NCBI GenBank assembly: GCA_977020255.1
Contig: CDROCS010000253.1
Span: forward strand, 2,976,001 to 3,040,000
DNA: 64,000 nucleotides
Direction: 5' to 3'
DNA from: Obrimoposthia wandeli
Lineage: Eukaryota
Part shown: piece by piece, positions 6,001 to 45,167 of the stretch
Position numbering within the stretch: position 1 is the first letter of the stretch
Layout: each line of letters starts with the position of its first letter
Made by a program: the position numbers and the translations under genes
Notes under the pieces: generated by a model
What the model was told of the DNA's origin: nothing
Seen by the model: the letters and a program-made list of their open reading frames with translations, nothing else
Databases searched by the model: none

Positions 6001-6939
6001 ACAGCTAAGGATGCATCTGTAAAAAAGCCACAAGTTAGTCGCTTAACTACCCGTGTTAATAAAACACTTTTAGCGACTAACAATACCTTTTTAGCTGACC
6101 ACACCATTGGTGATGACAAAGTATTACCAACCGTGTGCGCCATTGCATGGATGAGTGATGCAGCAATGGTTGCTTATCCAGCATTTCATTATCAAGGACT
6201 AGTAAACTATAAGTTGTTTAAAGGCATCATCTTTGATGGCAGTGAAGCAACAGAATATTCAATCGATATGATTGCTCAATTTGAGGGTGAAAGCTTAGTA
6301 GTAGACACTAAAATCTCAAGTACTAATGAGCAGGGTAAACTAGTATTTCATTATGGCGCTCAGTTGACATTAGTCGCTAAAGCGCAAAGAAAAGAAGCGC
6401 CAACGGTTGAACTTATATTACCTGAAGCAGTACAAGCGAGCAGAGAAAATGCAAACGCTTTATATACTAATGGTACTTTATTCCACGGTGAAAGCCTGCA
6501 AGGTATTAAGGCAATACTTGAGTGTAATGAGCAAGGTCTATTATTGAGCTGTCAAGTACCAGCATTGGCAAGTCTTAAGCAAGGCGAATTCCCGATTAGC
6601 CCGTTAAATAGTGCAAGTGAACACTCGAACATCTTTGCCAATGATATCGCTTATCAAGCCATGTTAGTTTGGGCTAAAAAGCAGTTAGGTTTAGGTAGCT
6701 TACCGTCAAGTACACAAAGTTGGACGGTATACCGCGACGTCAGTCTTGGTGAAAACTTCTACCTTAAATTAACGGTAGTGAAAAGTTCAGGCAAAGGAAA
6801 GCAACGTGGCTCTTTAGTGGCTGACATCGAACTTATTGATGAAAATAATCAATTACTCAGTGAGATAAAATCCGCTAAGGTGACTGCTAGTGCTAACTTA
6901 AATGATTTATTTCTGCCTAAAAGTGAGGCCAGTGCGTAA
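1..6939 (+). CDS. pfaA: PUFA synthase PfaA (KS C-terminus, MAT, 6x ACP, KR, DH); 5' end lies outside the window
   Basis: Frame open from base 1; KS end [19 protein letters not shown] GHSFG, six [14 protein letters not shown] ACPs, KR GGAKGVT...YSIAN, [10 protein letters not shown]. Confidence 0.97.
   Translation, partial: [2312 protein letters not shown]
2380..4195 (+). repeat. Six tandem near-identical ACP-coding units with Ala/Pro/Val-rich linkers
   Basis: [33 protein letters not shown] occurs six times in PfaA. Confidence 0.95.
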
Positions 6940-9644
6940 TGGTTAACAATCATTATAAAACGGCCATTATTGGTTTAGATGCTCAGTTTGAAAACCAACA
7001 GGGTATTCAAACCGATATTGATTGTGTCGAACGCGCGCTATACCTTGGGAAAAGCTCAGAGAAAAGTGTAACCACGAGCAAAGCAGAGCAGATTAAGCCA
7101 AATACAACACTCAATATGAGCTGTTTAGCAGCGGTTGCACGTATGGCAAGTGCTAACAAAGTGAATAGCGCTGATATCAAAGCTGTTGTGTTAATGCACG
7201 ACAGTGAAAATACAGTCATTGATATTGAAAATGTTATTGTTGTTACTTCGTTAGCTAACGCACTTCAACAAATAGATGCGTTGATTGAGCAAAACTTCTT
7301 GGTAGCCTTGCTTGGTATTAATTTGCAAGGTACTAGTGCGTTTAGTTTCAGCGATAAGCAAAATAACAGTGATGTTTGTCAAGAGCTGGCGACCATTTCA
7401 TATGATCAAAACTTTAGCGCTTATCAAGCGTGTAGCGGTATTGCTGCATTATTATTTGCACCAGCGACGTTTGCACAAACTCATCACTGTTACGTGTATT
7501 CACGGGTAAAAGGTTTTGCCATAGGTAGTGATATAGCCAGTGTTACGGCTGCCGCGTTAGATAAAGCGCAAGTTAATGCAACAGATATTGGTTTGCTTGA
7601 AGTTTCTGCGTTATCAGATAAAGCAGATGCGCTTGCTGAAACACAAGGTTTATTGAGCCATTATTTAATAAATGAAGGTGCTAATGAAGCATTAAACACG
7701 GCTATCTCTTGTGCACGAAGTGTTACCGGCGAAGGTGCTGGATTTTCTGAGGTATTAGGATTGTTACGCAGCGTTATTGCGCTGCAACAACGTTATATTC
7801 CAGCCATCACTGATTGGCAACAACCTGAAGCCAGTGAACTTGAAAAATGGCAAATCTCAAGCTGTTATTTTCCAACAGAGGCACGCCCATGGTATCCACA
7901 GCCTAATGGTAATGCTCACCTTGGCGCCTACAGTTGTTTAAGCAAATCCGAAGGTAATTCAACAGCTAATTTAGAAGGTAACTCAGCAGTTAAGCATTAT
8001 TATTGTCACATCATTTTGCAAGAAGAGCAGGTTGGTCTTGTCGATGGTAAACATGCTGCAAGCGATATTCGCAGTAATGGTTTTATTGCCTGTAGTGATT
8101 TACAGCTAGTATTAATTGGCGCAAATGATCTACCCACTTTATTAACCCAGTTAATTGACCTTGAAGATGAACTTGAGCTTGAAAGTAAGTCTGTGCAGAG
8201 TAAAACACTCCTTAAAGATATTGCCTTAACTCGTTTTGAACAGTCAAAAGCCAATAGTAGTCGTTATACGATTGCCTTATTGTGTGAATCGATAGAAGAA
8301 TTAGCCAAAGAAATAAAACTCGCTAAAGCCGGTGTTCCTCTAACATTTTCTGATGTTAATTCTGATAAGAATAAACAGCAAGAATGGCGAACGCCAAAAG
8401 GCAGCTATTTTAGTGCTAGCCCTGTTAATGATATTGAGTCATTTACTCATTCAGCTACTCATTCAGGTAAGGATTCAACATCCACTAATAATGTTTCATT
8501 TCTATACCCAGGCATTGGTGCAACGTATGTCGGTTTAGGGCGTGATTTATTCCACCTTTTTCCTGAAATACACCAAGATGTTGCTAACTTAGCCGACGAT
8601 ATTGGTGCAAGTTTAAAAGATAAGTTATTAAATCCTCGCTCAATAATTCGTCCTGATTTTAAAGCATTAAAACAGCTGGATTTAAACCTCCGTGGTAAGT
8701 TGGCCGATATTGCTGAAGCTGGCGTTGGTTTTGCGTGTGTATTCACTAAAGTATTTGAAAACGTCTTTAAGGTAAAAGCAGACTTTGCTACAGGTTACAG
8801 CATGGGTGAAGTCAGTATGTATGCTGCATTGGGTGCATGGCAACAACCTGGCTTAATGAGCGCACGTTTGGCTAATTCAGATACCTTTAATCAACGTTTA
8901 TGTGGTGACTTGTTAACTTTGCGTGAGCATTGGGGCTTGCCTAGTCCTACTAATGATAGTGAACAAGGTGAATTAATTTGGGAAACCTACACCATTAAAG
9001 CAACGTTAGCTGAAGTTATCGCTGCCAGTGAAGGTGAAGAACGTGTTTATTGCACCATAATTAATACGCCAGACAGTTTATTATTAGGTGGTTATCCAGC
9101 CGATTGTCTACGCGTTATTAAAAAACTTGCTGTACGTGCTATGCCACTTAACATGGCAAATGCAATTCACAGTGCACCAGCAAAAATTGAATATGACGAC
9201 ATGGTTGAACTTTATACCATGGACGTTACTGCGCGCTTAAAAACTAAAATGTATTCAAGCTCTTGTTACTTACCCGTACCACAAATGAGCAAAGCGATTG
9301 CTCACAGTGTTGCTAAGTGTTTATGCGACCGAGTAGATTTCCCCCGTTTAATTAACACCATGCATGATAAAGGTGCGCGGGTATTTATTGAAATGGGACC
9401 AGGACGCTCGTTGTGCAGCTGGGTAGATAAAATTTTAGATTTTGACGATAACAGTAAAAATGGCCTCTCTAATACAGAACCTAATCAAGTTGCTCATAAA
9501 GCACGAGTATCAGTGCCAGTGAATGCAAAGGGCACAAGTGACGAGTTAACGTATGTGAGAGCCGTTGCAAAATTGGTTAGTCACGGGGTGAAACTAGATC
9601 TTCACCGCTTATTTAATGGCTCAATTATCGTTCATAAAACATAA
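6939..9644 (+). CDS. pfaB: PUFA synthase PfaB, long form (degenerate KS-like N-terminus + acyltransferase)
   Basis: Overlaps pfaA stop; AT motifs FLYPGIG, GYSMG, FIEMGP; 901 aa. Confidence 0.93.
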   Translation: MVNNHYKTAIIGLDAQFENQQGIQTDIDCVERALYLGKSSEKSVTTSKAEQIKPNTTLNMSCLAAVARMASANKVNSADIKAVVLMHDSENTVIDIENVIVVTSLANALQQIDALIEQNFLVALLGINLQGTSAFSFSDKQNNSDVCQELATISYDQNFSAYQACSGIAALLFAPATFAQTHHCYVYSRVKGFAIGSDIASVTAAALDKAQVNATDIGLLEVSALSDKADALAETQGLLSHYLINEGANEALNTAISCARSVTGEGAGFSEVLGLLRSVIALQQRYIPAITDWQQPEASELEKWQISSCYFPTEARPWYPQPNGNAHLGAYSCLSKSEGNSTANLEGNSAVKHYYCHIILQEEQVGLVDGKHAASDIRSNGFIACSDLQLVLIGANDLPTLLTQLIDLEDELELESKSVQSKTLLKDIALTRFEQSKANSSRYTIALLCESIEELAKEIKLAKAGVPLTFSDVNSDKNKQQEWRTPKGSYFSASPVNDIESFTHSATHSGKDSTSTNNVSFLYPGIGATYVGLGRDLFHLFPEIHQDVANLADDIGASLKDKLLNPRSIIRPDFKALKQLDLNLRGKLADIAEAGVGFACVFTKVFENVFKVKADFATGYSMGEVSMYAALGAWQQPGLMSARLANSDTFNQRLCGDLLTLREHWGLPSPTNDSEQGELIWETYTIKATLAEVIAASEGEERVYCTIINTPDSLLLGGYPADCLRVIKKLAVRAMPLNMANAIHSAPAKIEYDDMVELYTMDVTARLKTKMYSSSCYLPVPQMSKAIAHSVAKCLCDRVDFPRLINTMHDKGARVFIEMGPGRSLCSWVDKILDFDDNSKNGLSNTEPNQVAHKARVSVPVNAKGTSDELTYVRAVAKLVSHGVKLDLHRLFNGSIIVHKT

Positions 9645-27874: not shown

Positions 27875-28078
27875 AAAAATTCCTTAGCCTTTATTAGATG
27901 TGGGGTAATGTCACAACATGCCGTTTACTATAAAATGCGCGGTCAAGCTGTTAGCAGATCAAGTCCCGTTTTAAATTCTTGTTGAACGAAGCCGCTCTGC
28001 GGCAGAGTAGATTTAAAACAACCTTCCATACTCAATAACAGCATTGTCACTTCGATGATGCGTTATTGGAGTATACCC

Positions 28079-28966
28079 ATGAATACATCACAAGCACAAC
28101 ATTACAATTATCTTTATGAACAACACCTTATCAACCTATCCTTACAAGGTAAACGTCCTTCAACAATTGATGCTTACGCCCGTGCGGTTCGCCGTATAAC
28201 TGCCTTTTTTGATAAAGCACCTGATACCTTAACCACCGCTGACTTAAAACAATATTTCAACAGCCTCATTCAAACACATTCTTGGAGCACCATTAAGCTT
28301 GACCGTAATGGTTTACAGTTCTTTTACCGCTACACTCTCGATAAACAATGGGAGTGGCTCTCTATCGTTAAACCACCACAAGTAAAGCGCATCCCTGATA
28401 TTTTAACGGTCAAGCAAGTCAGTGATGTGATCAATCAAACCAAGCAACTTCGCTATCAAGTATTTTTTATAACGCTTTATTCTCTGGGACTGCGCTTAAG
28501 TGAAGGACTTAATTTAACCATACATGATATCGATAAATCGACAATGCTGGTACATGTTCGTGATGGTAAAGGAGGAAAAGACCGCATGGTGCCTCTGCCT
28601 GAGCAGACTCTGTTAGCGCTGAGGAATTATTGGAAAATACATCGCCACGCCCGTTTGATTTTTCCTGGCCTTCAGGTAAATACGAAAAACCATATGGATA
28701 AAGGCGGTGTTCAAAAAGCCTTAAAAAAGGTACTGCATGATTGTCGAATTAAAAAATTCATCAGCCCACATTCTCTTCGTCATTGTTATGCTACCCACCT
28801 GCTTGAACAAGGGCTTGATTTGCGTTCTTTGCAGCAATTACTTGGACACGCCAGTCTCAACACCACTGCACGTTACACACAGCTCACAAAAGTGAAACAA
28901 CGTGATATGTCACGCGCTGTAAACAAATTAACCGATAAACTCGACATTATATGGTCTATAAAATGA
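28079..28966 (+). CDS. Tyrosine recombinase (phage integrase family, N-terminal SAM-like domain), intact
   Basis: LGLRLSE (R), GKGGKDR (K), HSLRH, LGH, TARY catalytic set; no IntI-specific insertion. Confidence 0.93.
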   Translation: MNTSQAQHYNYLYEQHLINLSLQGKRPSTIDAYARAVRRITAFFDKAPDTLTTADLKQYFNSLIQTHSWSTIKLDRNGLQFFYRYTLDKQWEWLSIVKPPQVKRIPDILTVKQVSDVINQTKQLRYQVFFITLYSLGLRLSEGLNLTIHDIDKSTMLVHVRDGKGGKDRMVPLPEQTLLALRNYWKIHRHARLIFPGLQVNTKNHMDKGGVQKALKKVLHDCRIKKFISPHSLRHCYATHLLEQGLDLRSLQQLLGHASLNTTARYTQLTKVKQRDMSRAVNKLTDKLDIIWSIK

Positions 28967-30028
28967 GTACCTTTATTGAGTTACTTCGTCAACATCACCA
29001 AGCCCTTGAAATTCAGTATAGCGTGAAATTAACACCTGACATGCGTAAAGCGATTTATGCCATGCTTATGTGCAAAACACCACAGCAACGCCAATCACTT
29101 TGGGCTTGTGACCATTGCGAGCATCATGACCGTATGCCACTTTCTTGTGGCCATAGAAACTGCCCGCAGTGCCAACAAAACACAACATCACAATGGCTCG
29201 CTAGACAAAAAGCAAAACGCTTACCTGTTGAGTATTTCATGGCGACTTTTACCTTACCCTTTGAGTTAAGGCCTTTAGCTAAAAGCCGTCCTAAAGCATT
29301 ATATCAATTGATGTTTTCAGTCACATCTTCAATATTGAAAGACTTTGCCACACGCCAAGGCTTAGGCGACATTGGCTTTACCTCGGTACTACATACCCAC
29401 AGCAGAAGGCGTGAACTACATCCCCATTTACATATTATTGTGCCAAATGGCGGTTACGACTCTAAACGAAAACAATGGCGTAAAGGCAAGAAAGGCTATT
29501 TGTTTAACGAGTTCGCACTCGCTAAAGTCTGGAGAGCACGCGTGTTTGAAGCTATAAAAAAACATCCTGAGCTGTCACTGACTACTATCAAAAAACTGCC
29601 AACAAAATGGGTGGTCGATTGCAAAAAAATAGGTCATGGCTTACCGGCGTTAAAATATCTGTCTCGGTATTTATATCGTGGGGTATTGCCCGATAAAGAC
29701 ATTATTCATTATGACCAACACAACGTCACCTTTCGTTATAAAGACAGTGCAAATTCCAAACAAAAATAACACCCCCGTACGTTGCCAACACTCAAATTCT
29801 ACGCTGATACTGCAACATGTTTTGCCCAAAGGCTTGCAGCGGGTACGTGATTATGGGCTGTTATCCTCAGGCGCTAAAAAGCTTAGGTTAATAATTCAAT
29901 TGCTGTTATTACCCATTCACGACTGGCTTAAACCCAAAAAGGAAGAAACCACACCCACGCGGGCCACGAGAATATGCCCTTGCTGCAAGCATAAAATGCA
30001 TTGCACGGGAGTGACACGAACGCCCTAG
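28963..30028 (+). pseudogene. IS91-family HUH/Y2 transposase, frameshifted near 29755-29805
   Basis: CDHC/SCGHRNCPQC zinc finger, HPHLH, YLSRY; split into two ORFs relative to copy 2. Confidence 0.85.
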
Positions 30029-30301: not shown

Positions 30302-30542
30302 GCTTCTGGATTTATTGACCAAATACATGATTAGCTGACGCTAAAGGTTAACAAATCTATAAACCTGAAACAACCACAACCCGCCTAACTATCGCACCAA
30401 CTTTAATTTGAGCCAATGAATGAAAAACTAATAGATTTTTACTCAATACCAATGGCGAAAACTGGAAGGCAACAAATACAAATTTGATGATACACGCCTT
30501 ACTTTTAGCAAAAATCACCTAAGGAAGAAGGCGGCACATAAC
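30296..30542. other. Non-coding cassette, family A (copy 1)
   Basis: Complementary ends GTTATGTGC/GCACATAAC, no ORF of 60 aa or more, TTTGAGCC...GGCGAAAACTG motif. Confidence 0.75.
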
Positions 30543-30611
30543 CTTGGGTAAAAGTTGCTAAGGGCACGTTTGGAACAAACTGTACGTGTCAAATTATTGC
30601 CGTTGTTATGT
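30536..30611 (-). repeat. Degenerate, shortened attC
   Basis: ACATAAC...aaactgtacgtgtc...GTTATGT. Confidence 0.55.
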
Positions 30612-30639
30612 TACCACCACTGAAATTAAGGAAATATAT

Positions 30640-30864
30640 ATGAATGAATTTGATGAAGTATTACCAGTATTAACAAGTGACCAAGTTTTTGTTTGTGAAG
30701 ACGGTTGCGGGGATTGTAGAGCTATTGAGTTTGATTTTTGTTACAGCCGGTCTGAAAATACAAATACTGGAGAAGTTACAGAACTCACGCATAAAGCTTA
30801 CAAGTCTAGCTGTTGCGGTGCAAAAGTTAACGTTTGGGATGAGTCGATAGAAGACTTGGTTTAG
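30640..30864 (+). CDS. 74-aa Cys-rich protein, antisense to the array inside a cassette
   Basis: RBS AAGGA; CEDGCGDC...SSCCG; cassette ends GTTATGTTA/TAACATAAC. Confidence 0.7.
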   Translation: MNEFDEVLPVLTSDQVFVCEDGCGDCRAIEFDFCYSRSENTNTGEVTELTHKAYKSSCCGAKVNVWDESIEDLV

Positions 30865-30866
30865 TA

Positions 30867-30967
30867 ACATAACGCCCCATTAAGAGGCAAATAATTGTTG
30901 GCTAAAATAAGCGACGAAGGAGCAAATAGCCAACTGTTATTTGTCCTGCTTGAATGGCTTGTTATAT
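30867..30967 (-). repeat. attC
   Basis: ACATAAC gcccc attaagaggcaaa...gttggct...agccaact...tttgtcctgcttgaat ggctt GTTATAT. Confidence 0.92.
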
Positions 30968-30969
30968 TT

Positions 30970-31544
30970 TTATTTAAACCGGGAAGGATCAATTAATTTG
31001 ATTTCTGTCATTCGGTTGAAAATTTTTGAATACTTGTGCCATTCATCAGTTGGACTACCAGCAACAGTAATTCCGACAGAGTCTTTTTCATTATCCCAGA
31101 GCAGTGAATGTAAAATTGTGAAATTTATTGGAATACCATTCCTCATTTGCACTTGTGTCACTTCTATACATGTGCGAATAAAGTCCCCAATTCTATTTGT
31201 ACCACAACGTTTGATTAGAGCTGATGTTTTTATTATGTGTTCAATATATCCTTGAACATACTCTTCCGGCGTTAACTCTGTCCCCTTATATATCCCCATC
31301 ATAAATTGAATAGATAAACCTGTTTCATATCCATTAATTGGATCTTCTTTAGATATTATCCAATTTAGAGAATTAGCAGCCTTGTGCCTTTCCGCATAAA
31401 ACCAACTTTTGGGTTTTGGAACTTCGCCACCAGTAGGTTCTAAAATCTGTTTTACAAATTCGACTGGCTGGTTTTTTGTATTATTTTCTGTAGACGCGCA
31501 TGAATGACCAAACTAAATAAGTACATTAGTAAAAATATTTTCAT
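30970..31544 (-). pseudogene. Putative lipoprotein, one frameshift near the lipobox
   Basis: MKIFLLMYLFSLVI, then a shifted frame SCASTENN that runs in frame into ORF 30970-31302. Confidence 0.6.
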
Positions 31545-31575
31545 AATTTTAATTGACTCAATAGATAATTTAAAA

Positions 31576-31667
31576 ATATAACGCCTTGCTAAGGGGAAAA
31601 TTATGGTTGGCTATAATGCGCGAAGCGCAGCCAACTGTAATTTTTCCGTTTGAGCAACTTGTTATAT
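31576..31667 (-). repeat. attC
   Basis: ATATAAC...GTTATAT with gttggct/agccaac arms. Confidence 0.92.
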
Positions 31668-31895
31668 GCAACGCTGGTAAAACCAAGCTTTGCACGAATT
31701 TAAGAAGCCCGTAATATATAACCTAACCGTGAACTTTTACGCTACACGCGAAAGGTTGAACAAAATTAATAGCGTTGCCACCTTTGAAAAAGGTAAAAGA
31801 GGCAATGCTTATTAATGCTGACGCGAACCAGTTTTAGCGAAAAACTATTAACTAGAAAGCACTTTATTTAAAGCTAATTTTTAATAGCATATAAC
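31662..31895. other. Non-coding cassette, family B (copy 1)
   Basis: Bounded by GTTATATGC/GCATATAAC; 102-bp core identical to 38924-39025. Confidence 0.8.
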
Positions 31896-31985
31896 GCCCC
31901 AATAAGAGGCTAAAAATTGTTGGCTAAAATAGCGAGGCACGAGCACGGCCAACTGTTTTTAGTCCTTTTGATTGCCTTGTTAGTT
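31889..31985 (-). repeat. attC
   Basis: ATATAAC...GTTAGTT. Confidence 0.92.
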
Positions 31986-32276
31986 GCTTTGGACTTGGGG
32001 TGCCACAACAGAAGCTAATAAGTTACCATGCGTTTACTTTACAGTTTGACTCAAAAAGCATCTCCGCACTACACAATCAAACATGAATTTTGAGCCTTAA
32101 AAACTAAAGCTAATTGAATCATTAAACTGAGTAAGGCGAAAACTGGGGAGGGCAAAAAGGAAGATACTATTTGAAGGCACTTCCATTGCCAAACCAAAGA
32201 TTGAACCAAACGCAAAAAACTAAGTTAAGAACCAAACTAGCAAATAAATTTAACTAATTTAGAGCGGACAACTAAC
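31980..32276. other. Non-coding cassette, family A (copy 2)
   Basis: Ends GTTAGTTG/CAACTAAC; no ORF of 60 aa or more; shared motif. Confidence 0.78.
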
Positions 32277-32370
32277 GCCCTCGTTAATGGGCAAATGATA
32301 GTTGGTTAAAATAAGCGACGCAGGAGCAAAAACCAACTGTAATTTGTCCTGATTTAACAGCTTGTTATAT
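32270..32370 (-). repeat. attC
   Basis: AACTAAC...GTTATAT. Confidence 0.92.
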
Positions 32371-32628
32371 TTATTTATGACTTGCGTCATTAATGTGTTT
32401 TTTTACAGCCTCAACTTGTGCATCACATTGCCTTTTACTGTCACCAGACATCTCAGAGCACTTTTGAGATGAACCTCCGCTATTTGTTGCAGCATCAGTA
32501 GCAGCCGCTAAAGCTAAACAGACAGGCGTCGCTGAGCCACAATTTGCAGCTTTATCGTAGTTTGGGCTCGAGCTGCAACCGCTTAGCACTATAGAAATTA
32601 ATGCAGTGAGTAATTTGATAAATGACAT
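32371..32628 (-). CDS. Small lipoprotein cassette
   Basis: Signal peptide with LSGC lipobox; four further Cys. Confidence 0.75.
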   Translation of the reverse strand: MSFIKLLTALISIVLSGCSSSPNYDKAANCGSATPVCLALAAATDAATNSGGSSQKCSEMSGDSKRQCDAQVEAVKKHINDASHK

Positions 32629-32646
32629 ATCCGTATACACCTATAA

Positions 32647-32745
32647 ATATAACGCCCACATTAACGGGCTAAGTAATAGTTGGCTAAAATAGCGAAGAAT
32701 GAGCACGGCCAACTGTTGCGTGTCACGTTGATTTACTTGTTATAT
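32647..32745 (-). repeat. attC
   Basis: ATATAAC...GTTATAT. Confidence 0.9.
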
Positions 32746-32749
32746 GCAA

Positions 32750-32965
32750 TTAGTTATTACAAGCACAAGCTAGTTTTCCATTACTTTGATGCCACTCTTG
32801 ATAATTACCACTAGAACAATTACGCCTAACATCAGGACAACTTGCACCAACGTAACTAATTTCGGTATCAGTAGCTTTTTCAAACGCTGATTCGGCAATG
32901 GCTCCTACGAGAGAAGAACAACCTGAAAGTAGAACAAGTATAAATGTGACGGGTAGGTATTTCAT
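32750..32965 (-). CDS. Small lipoprotein cassette
   Basis: LLSGC lipobox; C-terminal Cys cluster. Confidence 0.75.
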   Translation of the reverse strand: MKYLPVTFILVLLSGCSSLVGAIAESAFEKATDTEISYVGASCPDVRRNCSSGNYQEWHQSNGKLACACNN

Positions 32966-32979
32966 GCGTGATCCTTATT

Positions 32980-33084
32980 GGCTAACGCCCTGCTTTAAGG
33001 CAAATTCAGGTTGGCTAAATGTGAAGTGGAGCGGAATCCGCCAATCGTAGTTTCGCTGGTCCCAATTTGAACAGCTTGTTGAAC
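32980..33084 (-). repeat. attC whose R'' box is interrupted by IS91-like copy 2
   Basis: GGCTAAC gccct...ttgaacagcttG|TTGAAC. Confidence 0.8.
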
Positions 33085-33171
33085 GCCGCTCTGCGCAGAG
33101 TGATTTAAAATGAATCTCCATACTCAATAACAGCACATTATCACTTCGATGATGCGTTATTGAGTATACCC

Positions 33172-34003
33172 ATGAATACATCACAAGCACAACATTTACA
33201 TAATTATCTTTTATGAACAACACCTTATCAACCTTATCCTTACAAGTAAACGTCCTTCAACAATTGATGTTCTTAACCACCGCTGACTTAAAACAATATT
33301 TTCAACAGCCCTTTTATTCATTATTCTTGAGCACCATTAAGCTTGACCGTAATGGATTGCAGTTCTTTTACCGCTATACACTCAATAAGCAATGGGAATG
33401 GCTCGCTATCGTTAAACCACCGCTGCAAAGCGCATCCCCTGATATTTTAACGGTCAAGCAAGTCACAAGTGAGGTAATTAATCAAACCAAGCAACTGCTA
33501 TCAAGTATTTTTTATAACGCTTATTCTCTGGGACTGCGCTTTAAGTGAAGGGCTTAATTTAACCCTACATGATATTGATAAATCGACAAGCGCGGCATGC
33601 CTCGTGATGAAAGCAGTGAAAAAGACCGCATGGTGCCTCAAGTTGCCTGAGCAGACTCCTGTTAGCGCTGAGGAATTATTGAAAATACACGCCATGCCTG
33701 TTTGATTTTTCCTTACTTTCAGGTAAATACGAAAACCATATGGATAAAGGCAGTGCTCAAAAAGCCTTAAAGGTACTGCATGATTGTCGACCAAAAATCC
33801 AAGCACATTCTTCTTGTCATTGTTATGCTACCCACCTGCTTGAACAAGCGCTTGATTTGCGTTCTTGCGGGTAAATTACTTGGACACGCCAGTTCAACAC
33901 CACTGCATCGTTACACCACAGTCACAAAGTGAAACAACGTGATATGTCACGCGCCGTAAACGACTTAACAGATAAACTCGACATTACATGGACTGTAAAA
34001 TGA
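33172..34003 (+). pseudogene. Tyrosine recombinase with many frameshifts
   Basis: Colinear with 28079-28966 but with numerous indels (possibly assembly error). Confidence 0.8.
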
Positions 34004-35067
34004 GTACCTTTATCGATTTACTACGTCAACATCATCAAGCCCTTGAAACTCAGTATAGCGCTAAATTAACACAAGACATGCGTAAAGCGATTTATGCCAT
34101 GCTTAGGTGCAAAACACCACAGCAACGCCAATCACTTTGGGCTTGTGACCATTGTGAACATCATGACCGTATGCCACTTTCTTGTGGTCATCGAAACTGC
34201 CCACAGTGCCAACAAAACACCACCTCACAATGGCTAGCTAGGCAAAAAGCAAAGCGCTTACCTGTTGAGTATTTCATGGTGACCTTCACCTTACCCTTCT
34301 CTTTTGAGTTAAGGCCTTTAGCTAAAAGCCGTCCTAAAGCATTATATCAATTGATGTTTTCAGTCACATCTTCAATATTGAAAGACTTTGCCACACGCCA
34401 AGGCTTAGGCGACATTGGCTTTACCTCGGTACTACATACCCACAGCAGAAGGCGTGAACTACATCCCCATTTACATATTATTGTGCCAAATGGCGGTTAC
34501 GACTCTAAACGAAAACAATGGCGTAAAGGCAAGAAAGGCTATTTGTTTAACGAGTTCGCACTCGCTAAAGTCTGGAGAGCACGCGTGTTTGAAGCTATAA
34601 AAAAACATCCTGAGCTGTCACTGACTACTATCAAAAAACTGCCAACAAAATGGGTGGTCGATTGCAAAAAAATAGGTCATGGCTTACCGGCGTTAAAATA
34701 TCTGTCTCGGTATTTATATCGTGGGGTATTGCCCGATAAAGACATTATTCATTATGACCAACACAACGTCACCTTTCGTTATAAAGACAGTGCAACGAAC
34801 AAAATAACACCCCGTACGTTGCCAACACTCAAATTCTTAATGCTGATACTGCAACATGTTTTGCCCAAAGGATTGCAGCGGGTACGTGATTATGGGCTGT
34901 TATCCTCAGGCGCTAAAAAGCTTAGGTTAATAATTCAATTGCTGTTATTACCCATTCACGACTGGCTTAAACCCAAAAAGGAAGAAACCACACCCACGCG
35001 GGCCACGAGAATATGCCCTTGCTGCAAGCATAAAATGCATTGCACGGGAGTGACACGAACGCCCTAG
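34000..35067 (+). CDS. IS91-family HUH/Y2 transposase, open frame
   Basis: Zinc finger, HPHLH, YLSRY, RVRDYG, C-terminal CPCC. Confidence 0.92.
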   Translation: MSTFIDLLRQHHQALETQYSAKLTQDMRKAIYAMLRCKTPQQRQSLWACDHCEHHDRMPLSCGHRNCPQCQQNTTSQWLARQKAKRLPVEYFMVTFTLPFSFELRPLAKSRPKALYQLMFSVTSSILKDFATRQGLGDIGFTSVLHTHSRRRELHPHLHIIVPNGGYDSKRKQWRKGKKGYLFNEFALAKVWRARVFEAIKKHPELSLTTIKKLPTKWVVDCKKIGHGLPALKYLSRYLYRGVLPDKDIIHYDQHNVTFRYKDSATNKITPRTLPTLKFLMLILQHVLPKGLQRVRDYGLLSSGAKKLRLIIQLLLLPIHDWLKPKKEETTPTRATRICPCCKHKMHCTGVTRTP

Positions 35068-35277
35068 CCGAAAGGCGAATACAATAAGGATAATGGCTAA
35101 GGTAAGTAATTAATCTAGGGGGGAATAAAGAAAGGCAACATGGTTCGCTAAAACATAAACTGATGAAAAAGCATTGCCTTTTTCGTCTTAACTTCGTACG
35201 TCTTGCGATCTGGCAATTGATAGCAAGCCCTTCAAAAAACAAATCGCTATTTACTATATAAAGCAGACTACGGGCTT

Positions 35278-35332
35278 GTCCAACACCCGAATAAGGTGTC
35301 GGCTACGCGACACCTATTCTTATTTGTTATAA
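35278..35332 (+). other. attC-like terminal hairpin carried by element copy 2
   Basis: GTCCAAC accc GAATA(A)GGTGTCG gctacg CGACACCTATTC ttattt GTTATAA. Confidence 0.65.
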
Positions 35333-35662
35333 GGTATTTTCACCAGGTCGATAATCATAGTTTTTTCGCTCTTCAACCGATATTACATTCTCAACCATTT
35401 TCGATTCGGAAGCACCATACTTTTGGAAGTTTTCTCGACCTTCTATGATAGATAAACCATGATTAGCACCAGAAGGTTCATCTAATTCCCAACCTGTGCC
35501 TTCATCTTCCCAAAAGCAAATTGGACAAATTAAATAGTTTCCGCTTTCAGCAATACTTATGTATTCACAACATTCGCATTTAACTCTAGGTGTAAGATCA
35601 TCAGGAGAATACCAAATAAGCTTACGCTTAAATAAATTGCGGATTATGCTGAACATCGTCAT
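35327..35662 (-). CDS. CPCC-family cysteine-rich protein cassette
   Basis: CECC...ICPICFWED...SGANHGLS-EGRENF. Confidence 0.85.
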   Translation of the reverse strand: MTMFSIIRNLFKRKLIWYSPDDLTPRVKCECCEYISIAESGNYLICPICFWEDEGTGWELDEPSGANHGLSIIEGRENFQKYGASESKMVENVISVEERKNYDYRPGENTL

Positions 35663-35672
35663 ACCTTATAAC

Positions 35673-37561
35673 GAGGCTGTAGAATTACTCGTTTTTATAT
35701 TATTTTTAATCGTAATACTCTAACTGGATTATTTTCTGTTAACAATCAAAAACGTTTACGTTTTTGGCGATTTTTATTTTTACATCGTTGATAGTTTAAT
35801 AATGATTAGTTTTTACTTGTTTTGTCTTTGAGGTTACTTAGTGGGGGAAACAAGGGGTTTCTCCCCTTAGTGCAGGTTATTTCTTAACTTTTCTATATTA
35901 TGCACTAAACAATACATTTGCCATTGGCTATTTACTTTTTCTTGTCCGCGCAAGGTGAATTTATTCATGCCTTTATTCACCGTGATGTGCCAAACAATGG
36001 CTCGATTGTGCCTAATCGCTTACTGTATTGTCAAATGTCGTCCAGCGCTACTGGTTCATTTTTATCTTCATTTTGTCAGTGTAACTGTGATGACATTATC
36101 TGAGCTGGCAGTCGTTAAAAACTGCACCTGACGCCCTGTTTTGGTCGGCTTTACGCATGCATTGTTGAAATGCAGTAGCAGACCTTACAGTCTTTAAATA
36201 GCCGGTGAAACGGGTGTAACTTTTTCCAGCAACATTGATGATATGATTACCTTGTAGCTACATGTCCTGCTCCGGCTGGGCAACGGCAGGCAGGTTTCAG
36301 TGTCTTTATCAAAGTAAAAATCATCTCGACTAAATTGTTTAGGTTTATCTTTTTACTGCGCTTCTTTAATCGTGCCGTTTTTTCTTTTTTCTGTTGCATA
36401 GTTTCACTTATTTGAAACAGCGGGTTACGACTCTCTAAAAAGCATTATCAGCCATAACCAGTCATCAAGCCTTATAGTTTGCCATATACGCTAAATTAAC
36501 TTCACTATGAAAACCACTGTCGGCGGTAAACTTGGCTGTGGAAAAGGTATCGGGGGTGCCAAGATTATTGAGTTGTTGCTTGAGTTGCTCTACCGCGGGT
36601 TTTAATGTTTGTTGCTCGCCAACACTGCCCCAGGTTTGGGCTTGAAGAATGACTTGGTGTTTATCATCGTTAATTGCAATACCGTTGTAGCCTTGAATGG
36701 TACCTTTACTGGTGGTCATTTTAGCGCTGTCAGGGTCGGTAATATTACTCTTAATTGGCTTGCCTTGGCTACCCCGCTTATCTTCATTGTTAGTGAGGAA
36801 TTCTTTATTTCTTTATCGCGCTATTATCGAGTTTGGGCTTGTGCTTTAGGTCATGTTCTAGTTCATCTTGATTCAAGGCATCTTGGGCTTGATGCATAGC
36901 TAAAATTCGTTGACTGGCTCGACGCAGTTTCGCTTCTTTACGAGTGAGCTCTTCAATGGTGCCGCTCCATTCTTTACTGGCATTTGACTTGATTTTACAG
37001 CCATCGATTGAAAACATCTGCCGACCAATCAAACCTTCTTTATCACATATCATCATCAAGATTTGGGTGAACAGTGGGTTCTATTTGGTCTTTTCATACG
37101 GGCAACAAACAGGCGATAGCCGTAAAATGGGGTTGTACGTCACCCGATAAACTCATGAAGGTAATGTTAGTTTCACAGGCATTCGCAATACGACGACTAG
37201 TGATATACCCGCGAGAGTAGGCAAATAATATGATTTTTAACATCACGGCTGGAGAATAGGCGGCTGCGCCGCCTTTGTCATTATTGAACCACGCATCAAA
37301 CCCTGACAAATCAAGGTGATTATCAATAATATGCGCGAGCGCATATTCAAACGTACTATAACACTTGAACTGAAAATCAATGGGAATGAACTTACTTTGA
37401 CAGGATAAATCGGGTTTGTAGTTCGCCATAAGGTTTTACGGTGGGGGAATAATATCTATTAGATCACAGAAAAGATCGGGATTCAAGCTTAAAAATCGAC
37501 CTATTAACAAAATATAAAAAAAGACATAAAAACGTCTTTTTTGGAGAAATTCTACAGCCTC
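35673..37561 (-). mobile_element. IS1182-type insertion sequence inside an attC R' box
   Basis: 14-bp terminal IRs GAGGCTGTAGAATT / AATTCTACAGCCTC, flanked by duplicated AAC. Confidence 0.85.
35867..37429 (-). pseudogene. IS1182-family transposase, heavily frameshifted
   Basis: AYSPAVMLKIILFAY-TSRRIA-C, DGCKIKSNASK, IEPLFG...YCLVHNIEKL fragments. Confidence 0.82.
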
Positions 37562-37655
37562 AACGCCACGTTAAGCGGCAAAAAATTGTTGGCTAAAATT
37601 GTGAACGGAGTGAAACAGCCAACTGTTTTTTGTCCGTTTGAACGCCTTGTTAGGT
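37562..37655 (-). repeat. attC (R' box at 35666-35672 separated by the IS)
   Basis: AAC gccac gttaagcggcaaaa...tttgtccgtttgaac gcctt GTTAGGT. Confidence 0.88.
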
Positions 37656-37994
37656 TTAAGACCAGATTAGGTCACCGTAACCCCATATGATTGTGCCCGT
37701 AACCAGTAATATATGAGCCGCAAACGAAACATTGCGCCTTGGTTTAGTTGGTTTTGCTTTAAGCGGAATAGACATATTTATTTTTGATTGCATAAATTGA
37801 GCTCGTTGGATGTCTTCGTAAATGTGTGATGAGACCTTAAACTCAACAAGTGCAGCCAAAAGAACAACTACAGAACCTGAACGAGCAAACCAATTATAAT
37901 CAGTTGAATAGTAATCTGCGATTACAGAGATAACAGCAACTAATATAGCTACTCCAATAAGAGACCATTCAATCGTATACTTCCGACGCTTCAT
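37656..37994 (-). CDS. Hypothetical membrane protein cassette
   Basis: 112 aa, ~3 TM segments, bounded by attC sites. Confidence 0.75.
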   Translation of the reverse strand: MKRRKYTIEWSLIGVAILVAVISVIADYYSTDYNWFARSGSVVVLLAALVEFKVSSHIYEDIQRAQFMQSKINMSIPLKAKPTKPRRNVSFAAHILLVTGTIIWGYGDLIWS

Positions 37995-38004
37995 ATATAA
38001 GGAA

Positions 38005-38107
38005 ACCTAACGCCCAATTAACAGGCAAAAAATGGTTGGCTAAAATAAGTGAACGTAGTGAACAAAAAGCCAACTGTTTTTTGTCCTTGTTGAATTGCTT
38101 GTTAGGT
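38005..38107 (-). repeat. attC
   Basis: ACCTAAC...GTTAGGT. Confidence 0.93.
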
Positions 38108-38110
38108 GAA

Positions 38111-38422
38111 TTATATCGCCAAACTAGCAGCTAGATTGTGTAACGGGCTTACCAACATTACAAGAGATATTAAAAATGCGATTAATAGCCCACATTGTTT
38201 TTTAATTTTGGAATCTTTTTTAACAATTAGGTAAAGCGATATAACTATTGAGACTAAAACTACAAATATAAAACAATAACCTAATAATAACTCGATGATA
38301 TCTGAAATACCGTAAGGGTCATTTGGAGCTTTATACATTGAGCTATAAAAGAAATAACGAAATGAAGGCATTAACATAAAAAATATAAGATTAAGCCACA
38401 CCAATATTTTAATGATTCGCAT
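38111..38422 (-). CDS. Hypothetical membrane protein cassette
   Basis: 103 aa, ~3 TM segments. Confidence 0.75.
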   Translation of the reverse strand: MRIIKILVWLNLIFFMLMPSFRYFFYSSMYKAPNDPYGISDIIELLLGYCFIFVVLVSIVISLYLIVKKDSKIKKQCGLLIAFLISLVMLVSPLHNLAASLAI

Positions 38423-38443
38423 CCTGCTGACTCTTCCTTATTC

Positions 38444-38542
38444 ACCTAACGCCCTCGTTAAGGGGCAAAATTTAGTTGGCTAAAATGTTGAGGGACGAAA
38501 ACAGCCAACTGTATTTTGTCCTTCTTTAACAGCTTGTTATAT
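38444..38542 (-). repeat. attC
   Basis: ACCTAAC...GTTATAT. Confidence 0.93.
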
Positions 38543-38545
38543 GAA

Positions 38546-38743
38546 TTATGATTTATTAGGCTCATTGTCATTGGTTGGGTTGCCAGAAGGAAGCTTTATT
38601 AATATTTCAGATAAGCTTGCTGCGATTTTAGCCTGTGATATTGCAATATCTTTGTTAGATTGAACTAAACCGTAGAACCAGTAAATGACAAATATAGTTA
38701 AGATAAAGCCTAATATAGGGAATAACATTGTAAATAATAACAT
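38546..38743 (-). CDS. Small single-TM protein cassette
   Basis: 65 aa, hydrophobic N-terminus, RBS GGAG. Confidence 0.65.
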   Translation of the reverse strand: MLLFTMLFPILGFILTIFVIYWFYGLVQSNKDIAISQAKIAASLSEILIKLPSGNPTNDNEPNKS

Positions 38744-38777
38744 GATATAAAACTCCTTTTTTGATTATGATACTTTC

Positions 38778-38869
38778 ATATAACGCTTTGCTAAGGGGCA
38801 AATGACCGTTGGCTATAATGCGCGAAGCGCAGCCGACTGTTATTTGTCCGTTTGAGCAACTTGTTATAT
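38778..38869 (-). repeat. attC (near-identical to 31576-31667)
   Basis: ATATAAC...GTTATAT. Confidence 0.93.
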
Positions 38870-39099
38870 GCAGCGGTGGTTGTAGCCAAACACTGCACGA
38901 ACTTAAGTCACCCGTAATATAAAAACCTAACCGTGAACTTTTACGCTACACGCGAAAGGTTGAACAAAATTAATAGCGTTGCCACCTTTGAAAAAGGTAA
39001 AAGAGGCAATGCTTATTAATGCTGATGCAATCTAGTTTTAGCGAAAAACTATGCACTAGAAAGCACTTTATCTAAAGCTAATTTTTAATAGCATATAAC
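38864..39099. other. Non-coding cassette, family B (copy 2)
   Basis: Homologous to 31662-31895. Confidence 0.8.
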
Positions 39100-39190
39100 G
39101 CCCTGTTAAGGGGCAAATTGTAGTTGGCTATAATGTGAGCGGAGCGAAACAGCCAACTGTACTTTGTCCCGCTTGAACAGCTTGTTATAT
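39093..39190 (-). repeat. attC
   Basis: ATATAAC gccct GTTAAGG...GCTTGAAC agctt GTTATAT; extra bases on the minus-strand R''-L'' arm. Confidence 0.95.
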
Positions 39191-41933: not shown

Positions 41934-42223
41934 GATGGTAGCGGAAAACTACTAACGATAACAAGAACTTTACTGGTTTTGGCAGCCCGACCGTAGAACT
42001 AAAAAGTGCCCAGCGCCACGACTAACCAAACAGTGATTTTTGAGCCAAAAACGAAAGCTCGTTTAGTTAATGGCTTTACGACAATAATGTCTAAAATAGT
42101 AAAGTCTATTAGCGGCTATAACTAAACCGATCAGGCGAAAACTGAGGCGTAACCCACCAAAATAATTTGGGGAATACCGCTTTTACAAATAAAACTTTAG
42201 CTGATTTCGTGGTGCCAAATAAC
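41928..42223. other. Non-coding cassette, family A (copy 3), first position in the array
   Basis: GTTATTT / AAATAAC complementary ends; no ORF of 60 aa or more; shared motif. Confidence 0.78.
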
Positions 42224-42245
42224 AGTTTATTATGAGGCAAAATTC
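42217..42245 (-). other. attI site (core GTTATTT on the minus strand at 42217-42223)
   Basis: Core matches the R'' of the first cassette; no attC hairpin follows; lies in front of divergent intI. Confidence 0.7.
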
Positions 42246-42408: not shown

Positions 42409-42424
42409 CTGTATGGGTGTACAG
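42409..42424 (+). promoter_or_regulatory. LexA (SOS) box upstream of intI
   Basis: CTGTatgggtgtACAG = CTGT-N8-ACAG, 16 bp before ATG 42441. Confidence 0.85.
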
Positions 42425-42440
42425 TTACCTTGAGGTTTTT

Positions 42441-43200
42441 ATGTCTTCTCCTTTTTTGCAGCACATTACGGAACAAATGCGTTTAAAACGTTATGCTAAA
42501 AGAACGATAGAAAGCTATGTCTATTGGATAAAGGCGTTTATAAACTTTAATGGCCAGCGTCATCCAATAAAATGTCATGATGTGGGAGTTGAAAATTTTC
42601 TTTCTCATTTAACAAACAAACTTAATGTCGCACCTAGAACCCAAGGTGTGGCATTAAATGCTTTAGTCTTCTTGTATAGAGGGATCCTGTTAAAGCCCTT
42701 AACGCTTGAGCTTAACTTCAATAAGTCTAAGCAGGTTACTAAGTTACCTGTCGTGTTAACCCAAGAAGAGGTAATTGCGTTACGTTTAATGGAGGTTGTT
42801 CGCTTAAGAGTACAGGACATTGATTTTGACTTTCATGCTATTCAAGTGTGGCAAGGGAAGGGCGGTAAAAATCGGCGTGTTACCTTAGTAAAGGAGTTGT
42901 GCGAGTCGTTTAAGTGAAGATCCCGAAACAGGTTTTGTTCGTCGACATCATATTGATGAAACAACATTAAGAAAATCAGTGAAAATGGCTGCATGCAATG
43001 CAGAGATAGAAAAAAATGTGACTTGTCATACGTTAAGGCATTCATTTGCCAACATTTATTGCAACGAGGGGCCGATATAAGAACCAGTACGCGAGGGAAC
43101 GAATTAAAGTCATACTGATATTCGTACTACGCAAATATACACTCATGTCATTGAACAGGGTGCGAATGGTGTTCGCAGCCCATTATCAGATTTACTCTAA
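42441..43200 (+). pseudogene. intI: Integron integrase, with internal deletions and frameshifts
   Basis: MRLKRYAKRTIESY-WI, LRLME-LRVQDIDF, GKGGKNR, DPETG-RRHH, CHTLRHSFA, TTQIYTHV, GVRSPL; 760 bp, most of the IntI-specific insertion missing. Confidence 0.9.
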
Positions 43201-43313: not shown

Positions 43314-45167
43314 CTAGGCTTTTTTAGTTTTTATGTAGTCATTAACTAAGTCGGCTAAAACGTTAAGTGGTACAGGACCATTTTTTAATACTACGTCATG
43401 AAATTCACGAATATCAAACTTATCACCTAATTGAACTCTAGCTTGTTCACGTAATTCAATAATTTTGTTCATGCCAACTTTGTAAGCAGTCGCTTGTGAT
43501 GGCATAACGACATGACGTTCAACCATTTTTACTGCATCAGATAAGGCATTAGGCGTATTAGCTGCGTAGTACTCTATGCCTTGCTTACGTGTCCACTGTT
43601 TAGTGTGAATACCAGTATCAACCACTAAACGACATGCACGCCATAATTCCATAGCTAAGCGACCAAAGTCAGAATATGGGTCTTGGTATAAGCCAATTTC
43701 TTTAGGGATCATTTCACTGTAAAGACCCCAGCCTTCAGTATGGGCGGTATAACCACCAAATTTACGGAACATGGGAATGCCCGTTAATTCTTGTTTGATT
43801 GCTAATTGCATGTGATGACCCGGAATACCTTCGTGATACGCTAAAGCTGCCATTTGATAAGTAGGCATCGCTTCCATATCATAAAGGTTGGCGTAATAAG
43901 TACCCGGGCGTGAGCCGTCTGGAGCAGGGCTTTCATAAAAGGCTTTTCCGGCAGACTTTTCTCTAAAGCCTTCAACCGCTTTAACTTTTAATGCCGCTTT
44001 TGGTTTGGTTAAAAATAAGCTGTCTAAACGACCTTCCATCTCATCGATAAGTGCTATGGCTTCAGTTAAGTAACGTTTTTTTCCTTCATCGGTAGCTGGA
44101 TAGTAAAATTGTTGGTCGGTACGCATGAAGTTGAAAAAGTCGTTAAGGCTGCCGTCAAAGTCAACTTGTTTCATAATCACACGCATTTCATTATGTATAC
44201 GTGTTACTTCACTTAAGCCAAGGGTATGAATTTGCGCTGAGGTTAAGTCAGTGGTGGTAGTACGTTTTAACGCGTTATTGTAAAAGGCTTCACCGTCAGG
44301 AAATTTCCAAGCGCCGTCACGGTTGTCTGCTTTTTTCTCAAGCGCGGTTAAGTAAGTGATTAATTGTTGGTAACCAGGTTTTAAGTTGTCAATTAGTGCT
44401 GCTTTTACGTCAGTAATTAAGACAGATTTTTCTGCATCACTAATGCTTAGCTTATTAATTTTACGAGTGAAGTCGGAAAAAATTGTGCTGTTAGACGTAT
44501 CGTCAAATGGAGCACCTACTAGAATATTTTTTGAGTCTCTAATAACATGTGGAAAAACAAATTTAGGGGCAATGATGCCTTTTGCTTCACGCAATTTAAG
44601 CTGTTCAACGAGTTGCCCTAGTAATTTTTGCGCGCCGCGAACACGAGCAATATAATCTTGTGCTTCTTTAACGTTACTGATTGAGTGCTGGTTAATTAAA
44701 AAGGCAGGTATTTGCGCGTGCGTGCCATGCATTTGATTAACGGGGTAACTATGAAAGCGCCATTTATAATCTGCGATATGATTTTCTAAGTTTTGAATGA
44801 ATAAATTAAGGCTTAATGTAGTTTGTACATCAAGGCTGTTGACGTCAATAGCTTTCACTCGCACAAGATTTGCTTTAGCAATCGCCAGCTCATTTGCTGC
44901 ATTTTCTTCTGAAAGATCATTCCATTGGTCGTAATCTTTTTTAATACCTAAATAGGTTTGTTTTACTGGGTTACGGTCAACACCTTCTTTAAAAATAGTG
45001 TCAAATAATGCATTAGCTTGCTCTGAGGCTGTTGTTGCTTTAACGGTAGCTTCATTAGCAGTGATAGCTGATTGTTTGTTATCTTGAGATGAAACGATTT
45101 GCTCTGAACAAGCACTGAGTAAAGCCGCGGTTATGGCAACGACTAACAGGGATTTTTTAAATATCAT
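43314..45167 (-). CDS. DUF885 family lipoprotein
   Basis: LLSAC lipobox; LAYHEGIPGHH, EGWGLYSE, PSQATAYKVG. Confidence 0.9.
   Translation of the reverse strand: MIFKKSLLVVAITAALLSACSEQIVSSQDNKQSAITANEATVKATTASEQANALFDTIFKEGVDRNPVKQTYLGIKKDYDQWNDLSEENAANELAIAKANLVRVKAIDVNSLDVQTTLSLNLFIQNLENHIADYKWRFHSYPVNQMHGTHAQIPAFLINQHSISNVKEAQDYIARVRGAQKLLGQLVEQLKLREAKGIIAPKFVFPHVIRDSKNILVGAPFDDTSNSTIFSDFTRKINKLSISDAEKSVLITDVKAALIDNLKPGYQQLITYLTALEKKADNRDGAWKFPDGEAFYNNALKRTTTTDLTSAQIHTLGLSEVTRIHNEMRVIMKQVDFDGSLNDFFNFMRTDQQFYYPATDEGKKRYLTEAIALIDEMEGRLDSLFLTKPKAALKVKAVEGFREKSAGKAFYESPAPDGSRPGTYYANLYDMEAMPTYQMAALAYHEGIPGHHMQLAIKQELTGIPMFRKFGGYTAHTEGWGLYSEMIPKEIGLYQDPYSDFGRLAMELWRACRLVVDTGIHTKQWTRKQGIEYYAANTPNALSDAVKMVERHVVMPSQATAYKVGMNKIIELREQARVQLGDKFDIREFHDVVLKNGPVPLNVLADLVNDYIKTKKA

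Follow-up and report, generated by a model that had tools for sequence, protein, structure and literature searches.

Chromosomal integron arrays consist in sizeable part of gene-less cassettes, which are poorly explained; carriage of a promoter is, to our knowledge, the only explanation of them tested so far. Those documented mostly carry promoters, some of them antisense, which are not callable in silico (Blanco et al. 2024, PMC11014356); that study makes no mention of small RNAs (sRNAs) or of secondary structure. A cassette-borne, trans-acting sRNA, sRNA-Xcc1 of Xanthomonas (Chen et al. 2011), is described in PMC8876359 and PMC12444791 as oriented against the cassette promoter Pc and travelling with symE. 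The DUF1874 motif, which has several stems and recurs in consecutive intergenic regions in an integron-like arrangement, was left undecided by its authors between RNA and single-stranded DNA (ssDNA) (Weinberg et al. 2017, PMC5737381). Here we analyze a stretch of 64,000 nucleotides (positions 2,976,001 to 3,040,000 of contig CDROCS010000253.1, assembly GCA_977020255.1 of Obrimoposthia wandeli; hereafter the window), in which an integron array carries two copies, A and B, of a cassette termed Family B. Judged from its sequence, Family B is a mobile gene-less integron cassette whose payload is a conserved folded element of ~125 nt. This element is real, conserved and previously undescribed, literature searches having returned no description of conserved structure in gene-less cassettes.

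Like the promoter-active gene-less cassettes (PMC11014356), Family B has a normal attC site and no open reading frame (ORF), and lies in large sedentary chromosomal integrons of marine gamma-proteobacteria. The two may also share a cis role on neighboring cassettes or on the integrase gene intI, antisense activity having precedent in PMC11014356 and PMC8876359. Unlike them, Family B contains a conserved covarying fold, in dozens of copies and several families. Its likeness to sRNA-Xcc1 lies in being a conserved non-coding cassette element that runs against the Pc direction, has been transferred horizontally between species and also occurs on plasmids. It differs in that Family B cassettes are gene-free, where sRNA-Xcc1 has the toxin gene symE as companion, and are multi-copy within arrays; neither sequence nor model similarity links the two. 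The Rfam search covered 4227 families, sRNA-Xcc1 included, and none matched the 64-kb window at its gathering threshold; E-value mode over 31500-32000 gave chance-level small nucleolar RNA and microRNA matches only (E>1). With the DUF1874 motif (PMC5737381), Family B shares a conserved multi-stem form, the RNA-or-ssDNA ambiguity and an integron-like setting; that motif lies between ORFs, in the place of attC, whereas Family B takes up an entire gene-less cassette, alongside an ordinary attC.

Two gene-less cassettes with an identical core

Copy A has a content of 226 nt (31666-31891, + strand; 224 bits in a profile search with nhmmer), and copy B one of 228 nt (38868-39095, + strand; 229 bits with nhmmer, 143.1 bits with the covariance model described below). 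An 87-nt attC, identified by regular expression and folding, lies to the left of each (31579-31665 for copy A, downstream of the content on the - or sense strand; 38781-38867 for copy B), and the next attC sites follow at 31892-31983 and 39096-39188. The left-hand attC is assigned to each cassette as its own because the array reads on the - strand, and its co-variation with the content across the family fits this assignment. The first-pass annotation of this stretch had described ~235-bp cassettes without a long ORF, with near-identical attC sites and an identical 102-bp core between diverging flanks, and each of these points was confirmed. Neither copy holds an ORF of 50 amino acids or more, or an ATG-started ORF of 20 or more; the attC sites agree at 79 of 87 positions; and 31720-31821 equals 38924-39025 exactly over 102 nt, with no further identical base on either side. 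Overall the contents are 89.5% identical, the 5' flank containing 1-nt indels. These are the only two Family B copies in the genome, and they stand 7.2 kb apart with unrelated cassettes between them.

The attC sites, mapped by regular expression and folding, place the array between ~19.4 kb and 41.9 kb of the window. Nearly all cassette ORFs are on the - strand, and every attC site of the array folds better on the + strand than on the -. At its right end the array meets an attI-like junction (42221-42238), AAC followed by AGTTTATTATGAGGC, which also follows Family B copies at four other loci (L003, L006, L018 and L053). Beyond it lies a truncated integron integrase gene, intI (42417-42917, + strand, 166 aa), which matches Pfam PF13495 (5.9e-24) and the first part of PF00589, and so retains, from a tyrosine recombinase, the SAM-like N-domain and the beginning of the catalytic domain; tblastn found homologs adjoining arrays at other loci. 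A + strand intI at the right end, together with the junction, shows that the array is read on the - strand and that the + strand is the attC bottom strand. Family B copies are thus attC-bounded, have their own attC at the sense-strand 3' end and lie in an array of uniform attC polarity beside attI and intI, which bears out their earlier description as mobile cassettes and identifies them as genuine ORF-less integron cassettes.

A conserved, covarying fold

The central feature of the content is P2 (31766-31815, + strand), a 14-bp helix with a bulged U on its 3' arm and a distal 6-bp hairpin. Its arms, at 31766-31779 and 31801-31815, contain one G.U pair and enclose an ACCTTT/AAAGGT hairpin, exactly as first annotated. 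In a plain MAFFT alignment of 61 distinct copies, P2 was 98.8% paired and 7 of its 14 pairs showed compensatory changes on both sides; one position reads G.U, U-A, A-U or G-C across copies. The base of the helix reads TTAAT...ATTAA/G in 81 of 81 distinct sequences, and the distal part varies in length. A covariance model was then built from 48 copies. In an alignment of the 81 distinct sequences, which was fitted to the model and so leans towards structure, 96.1% of cells were paired under the full model and 13 of 27 pairs carried double changes. The covariation score was 0.177, against 0.088 for shuffled alignments (0 of 500 reached the observed value) and 0.008-0.040 for slid partners. Covariation across homologs, the check proposed with the first annotation, is thus strong in the main helix, and compensatory pairing beyond both controls marks a structured non-coding element, either RNA or ssDNA. 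Folding energies agree: the 124-nt core of copy A reached -35.6 kcal/mol on the + strand (z -4.77, equaled by none of 200 shuffles) and -29.4 kcal/mol on the - strand (z -2.65).

P2 is enclosed by P1, whose strands are TTTT-A-CGCTA (31735-31744, + strand; other families have TTTT-GA-GCC here) and TAGCG-A-AAAA (31835-31844, + strand). In the unfitted alignment this UUUU-A-CGCUA/UAGCG-A-AAAA helix is 95.5% paired yet nearly invariant. Between P2 and the 3' strand lies P3 (31816-31825, + strand), a 3-bp hairpin read by eye as TGC..GCG, and elsewhere as GTG..CAC, GTA..TAC or GC..GC; it is 72% paired, in MAFFT columns that are out of structural register. In copy B the corresponding parts, also on the + strand, are P1 at 38939-38948/39039-39048, P2 at 38970-39019, P3 at 39020-39029 and the CCGTAATAT box, discussed below, at 38912-38920.

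Two flanking hairpins proposed in the first-pass annotation fared less well. A 5' hairpin, H1 (GCAA..TGGT/ACCA..TTGC, 31668-31693, + strand), adjoins the cassette's own attC and had been said to be kept by compensatory change. The change from GCAA/TTGC to GCAG/CTGC is real, and five pairs have double changes, but H1 is only 78% paired family-wide: the GCAA-to-GCAG position forms G-C in 25 sequences and A-U in 18 and is unpaired in 18, and H1 is broken in GATACAAT sub-lineages. The 3' AGTTTT/AAAACT hairpin is present in both window copies but is not conserved, being 70% paired across the family and absent from the sister families. On these grounds it was rejected in favor of P1, the long-range closing helix, whose 3' strand accounts better for the AAAAC arm. 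A local hairpin found by RNAalifold, CGTGA/TTACG, competes with P1 for the same bases and is likewise absent from the sister families.

Two other readings of the conserved segments were discarded. All mismatches in P2 are G.T on one strand, which rules against a double-stranded palindromic operator, and a hammerhead-like reading of the GAAAC/CUGAG segments fails on the order of its elements and lacks an Rfam match. In one genome (G007; loci L047, L048 and L058-L066), a lineage of at least 15 copies has a 45-nt insertion in the distal hairpin loop, and this insertion folds into a stem of its own, TTATTTCT/AGAAATAA.

The folded strand and an attC control

Several observations indicate which strand is folded. 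P2 cells contain 84 G.U pairs against 0 A.C; a blind scan of all column pairs recovers P2 only under the + strand wobble rule; and the covariance model scores ~140 bits forward against ~25 bits on the reverse strand at the same sites. It is therefore the + strand that folds, which runs antisense to the array and in the same direction as intI. A + strand fold antisense to the array had been claimed at the outset, and it is supported by the wobble pairs, the model scores, the - strand genes and the + strand intI.

As a control, we folded 254 distinct attC sites taken from the window and from loci L003-L055, attC sites being known to work as folded bottom-strand ssDNA (PMC5737381). G.T pairs numbered 1067 of 8466 on the + strand against 335 of 7191 on the -, and the + strand folded better in 243 of the 254 sites. 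The control also confirmed the polarity of the array.

Spread of Family B through Colwellia and beyond

Family B counts at least 75 copies in Colwellia, at least 24 of them in one genome; Colwellia sp. TT2012 alone gave 24 BLAST matches. A scan for the exact hairpin-arm pattern, with one genome per species, returned 41 matches at 33 loci in ~17 genomes, nearly all Colwellia, the others being Shewanella phaeophyticola, Pseudocolwellia and a Cycloclasticus metagenome-assembled genome. A profile search of these 33 stretches gave 53 strong matches and many weaker full-length relatives, which within each locus were always on the same strand as the strong ones. The covariance model identified 95 sites at E<=1e-6 in the loci examined. 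A Family B match was present in 28 of 401 genomes of that bacterial family and in 3 of 151 of an order-wide genome sample, while the phage records searched had none. Of the full-length copies, 55 had enough flank to judge: their own attC is present in 54 and the next attC in 48, and most of the remaining 7 end at an attI-like junction.

Family B is also present on a 792-kb Pseudoalteromonas replicon. A further copy (4335-4561; 87% identity, 132.5 bits) is in the integron of plasmid pRVS1-224 of Aliivibrio salmonicida (NZ_CP034238.1, locus L068), with dfrA1 nearby at 6512-6937, an intI-like gene beyond it at 7636-8156, and the cassette genes again on the strand opposite the Family B element. 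The presence of Family B beside a dfrA1 trimethoprim-resistance cassette in a fish pathogen shows transfer into Vibrionaceae on a mobilizable plasmid.

Exact identity over 102 nt within one genome could in principle reflect a recent duplication, gene conversion or assembly collapse without functional meaning; duplication and collapse were named as a refuting condition with the first annotation. We consider this virtually excluded, and it was rejected. Copy A shares 92.9% identity with a C. demingiae copy and copy B 95.6% with one of Colwellia sp. RSH04, each being nearer to a copy of another species than to its partner; the core is nearly invariant across the ~17 genomes and several genera; and the two copies differ in their flanks and attC sites as well as being separated by unrelated cassettes.

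No conserved reading frame

A decayed or very small protein gene, with a 22-aa or 40-60-aa frame on the - strand, was also considered for the cassette. A - strand frame reading ..LISIA..FFKGGNAIN.. is indeed open over 39-61 aa in ~13 divergent members, one of which starts it with ATG. This frame is not maintained family-wide, and no other is kept across Family B members. In the conserved core, 27 sequences have indels of 1 nt, 8 have indels of 2 nt and 2 have a single 45-nt insertion, while no indel is 3 nt long; the core has no codon (third-position) periodicity; start codons are mostly TTG or GTG; and substitutions obey base-pairing rules instead of the codon table. On these grounds (indels not in multiples of three, shifting frames and no periodicity), three frames were rejected: one of 28-41 aa on the + strand, one of 22 aa that crosses the hairpin on the - strand, and the longer - strand one of the divergent members. 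A small-protein or type I toxin cassette finds no conserved frame here, and a coding role, which we rate as highly improbable, is largely refuted.

A wider scaffold and its position in arrays

Sister gene-less cassettes in the same arrays have an architecture in common with Family B. On the + strand its order is a CCGTWA box, UUUU-GA-GCC, a junction ending in a UAGAAC-like sequence, a hairpin based on UUAAU/AUUAA whose 3' arm carries a bulged U, then a third, short hairpin, and GGC-GA-AAAC. The outer strands, UUUU-GA-GCC...GGC-GA-AAAC, can form the closing helix P1 with a conserved tandem G.A, and the inner end of this helix, read by eye, is compensatory between families (GCUA/UAGC, GCCAA/UUGGC, GCCUUA/UAAGGC and GCCAUU/AAU(U)GGU). 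One sister family, x, closes the distal P2 with GCAA, GUAA or GAAA (GNRA-type) loops. Its member in the window (42030-42146, + strand; 45.8 bits, E 8.6e-09 in cmsearch with filters off) has the same P1/P2 architecture. Two minimal members, which the first annotation had called Family A, lie at 30408-30460 and 32088-32143 (+ strand) and consist of TTGAGCC, 38-39 nt and GGCGAAA; in the second, P1 is TTTTGAGCCTTA/TAAGGCGAAAAC enclosing ~32 nt. Since the minimal members share the tandem G-A scaffold, Families A and B are branches of one superfamily.

Members of this superfamily stand first beside intI in five arrays. In the window the first cassette is that of the x family, which is gene-less, adjoins the attI-like junction and the truncated intI, and points towards intI. 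In four other genomes (L003, L006, L018 and L053), Family B is the first cassette, with AAC followed by AGYTTAWTA.GAGG at the junction, and in four more (L025, L035, L021 and L022) it lies within ~2 kb of intI. First position and abundance together fit very active cassettes; they also fit a function directed at the downstream, same-strand intI.

Pieces of the Colwellia sp. TT2012 array (L004, L008, L013, L015, L019, L031 and L033) consist largely of gene-less structured cassettes, in a sample biased by its selection around Family B copies. Within it, the + strand bears the P1-type tandem-G.A motif in 58 of 127 cassettes (~45%), and the contents of about two thirds of the cassettes are shorter than 330 bp.

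A proposed antisense small RNA and its alternatives

Our best reading, held tentatively and at slightly under even chances, is that the payload may be a cassette-borne antisense small RNA. The + strand would be transcribed into a small structured RNA of roughly 130-240 nt. Transcription would start just past the conserved, -10-like CCGTWA box and, as the element has no terminator of its own, probably end within the next attC hairpin or beyond it. Nucleotides conserved in junctions and loops could bind a protein or a target, with variable inserts that differ by family. The integron itself would be a plausible target, through intI expression or antisense interference with array transcription, because the element points to intI and is often first beside attI. 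The multi-helix architecture, the conserved junction nucleotides, the tandem G.A, the GNRA-type loops of the x family and the -10-like box upstream are all RNA-like features.

Several points weigh against this reading. The strand-specific wobble signal cannot separate RNA from bottom-strand ssDNA, because the attC sites share the same + strand bias; of the initial claim of an antisense RNA, the antisense fold is thus retained and the RNA nature weakened. Tandem G.A pairs and GNRA or GNA loops are stable in DNA as well. Covariation of P1 within Family B is not significant, and because the helix is nearly invariant it is not proven in this way. A promoter-like motif had been noted just before the core, and it is present in both copies (TTGCAC-N-TAATAT at 31690-31717 in copy A, CTGCAC-N-TAATAT at 38893-38920 in copy B, both + strand). 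Of this motif, only the CCGTAATAT box (31709-31717 in copy A) is conserved superfamily-wide, as CCGTWA, whereas the -35 hexamer TTGCAC/CTGCAC is replaced by unrelated letters in other lineages. A promoter scan listed no TTGCAC-TAATAT site, with scores no better than those of shuffles and no better on the + strand than on the -, and scans of the cassettes found no intrinsic terminator.

Public RNA data add little weight to either side. Six marine metatranscriptome libraries contain ~5% of the words of 30500-33500, and Logan contigs from them, when placed on the window, fall overwhelmingly on attC repeats. Relatives of the core occur in a few contigs (X17 records 21 and 22; X15 records 4 and 5) at depths of 2.6-7.9. 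Their substitutions respect + strand pairing (31774 G>A and 31808 C>T); these low-depth contigs are unstranded and could be carried-over DNA. In four of the libraries attC pile-ups, with summed word depth in the thousands, occur at 30803-31004, 31510-31711, 31813-32014 and 32217-32418. The contents between these pile-ups are mostly uncovered, a pattern that could stem either from related arrays being transcribed or from the way assembly treats repeats.

The main rival to a small RNA is a folded bottom-strand ssDNA element acting in cis on the excision or integration of its own cassette, which might aid the folding of the neighboring attC or bind IntI or another ssDNA-binding protein, and so let the cassettes multiply as selfish passengers. 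We regard it as somewhat unlikely. Family B resembles attC sites in its folded strand, its G.T bias, an imperfect hairpin whose 3' arm carries an extra-helical base, and an AT-rich palindromic base. P2 looks like an attC arm pair, with TAAT/ATTA in place of the TAAC/GTTA of attC, and its extra-helical T is on the 3' arm, as are the extra bases of these attC sites. The number of copies is very high (at least 24 in one genome, and the P1-type motif in nearly half of the cassettes of the biased array sample), and the newest position, beside attI, is often occupied, by Family B at the four loci named above and by the x family in the window. The promoter and terminator scans gave nothing convincing, and ssDNA and RNA motifs are bioinformatically indistinguishable (Weinberg et al. 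2017, PMC5737381).

Other features separate Family B from attC. P2 lacks the AAC/GTT core triplets that IntI cleaves and that define the base of an attC hairpin, so that the likeness is in shape only; it lies inside a larger multi-helix element, additional to a normal attC; and Family B is far more conserved in sequence than is usual for attC sites. Most known ssDNA signals are simple hairpins in which few unpaired bases are conserved, whereas Family B extends over ~125 nt with three helices and conserved junctions. The position near attI may merely reflect abundance, and literature searches brought up no experimental example of such an element within a cassette. A specific form of the ssDNA proposal, in which the tandem-G.A helix P1 and the bulged hairpin would be an attC-bottom-strand module for mobility or IntI binding with which gene-less cassettes spread selfishly and come to occupy much of the Colwellia arrays, we judge unlikely. 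If it were true, integrons would have a second type of structured signal made of ssDNA, alongside attC.

Ranked third, and clearly improbable in our view, is a Vibrio-type promoter cassette, a double-stranded DNA promoter acting in the sense direction on downstream cassettes or antisense towards intI, with the hairpin as a secondary feature of the transcript, a stabilizer or insulator. Most gene-less Vibrionaceae cassettes assayed have sense promoter activity, and some antisense (PMC11014356); antisense promoters in first-position, ORF-less cassettes have been proposed to raise integrase expression (Tansirichaiya 2019, as cited in PMC8876359). The first place that superfamily members take beside intI in five arrays is consistent with such a role. 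Read on either strand, the AT-rich CCGTAATATATAAC box scores as a -10, and in a hexamer scan of 61 members the best site was the CCGTAATAT box on the + strand in 21 and the same AT-rich box on the - strand in 22. A promoter alone would leave unexplained the conservation of ~125 nt, the compensatory changes in half of the P2 pairs and the strict + strand wobble rule. Conservation is lower in the promoter hexamers than elsewhere, neither strand had a site above the shuffled level, and such promoters are not identifiable in silico by the authors' own statement (PMC11014356).

The host and neighboring genes

The window is a bacterial stretch within a 1.35-Gb assembly; no runs of N and nothing resembling human sequence were encountered. 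A chromosomal DUF885 gene (43314-45167) flanks the array; its protein shares 88% identity with the Colwellia demingiae homolog and 84% with the one in Colwellia sp. TT2012. The host of the array is accordingly a Colwellia species, a contaminant or associate of the sequenced eukaryote. A tyrosine recombinase gene (PF00589, PF13495) and two IS91-type Y2 transposase genes (PF04986, PF14319) lie on the + strand within the array, at 28055-29769 and 33988-35067. They bracket the region of copy A, and the gene at 28951-29769 looks truncated.

Implications for integron biology

The ~3-fold bottom-strand excess of G.T pairs in attC sites offers a simple way of orienting arrays from sequence alone, and the same control is a caution for RNA-motif calls inside integrons. 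For gene-less cassettes, Family B represents a sharply defined alternative cargo, a ~125-nt covarying fold that can reach dozens of copies per genome, has sister families and has spread across genera. It raises the question of whether integron arrays might be libraries of antisense small RNAs, or whether cassettes may carry ssDNA signals other than attC that affect their own mobility or the expression of the integrase.

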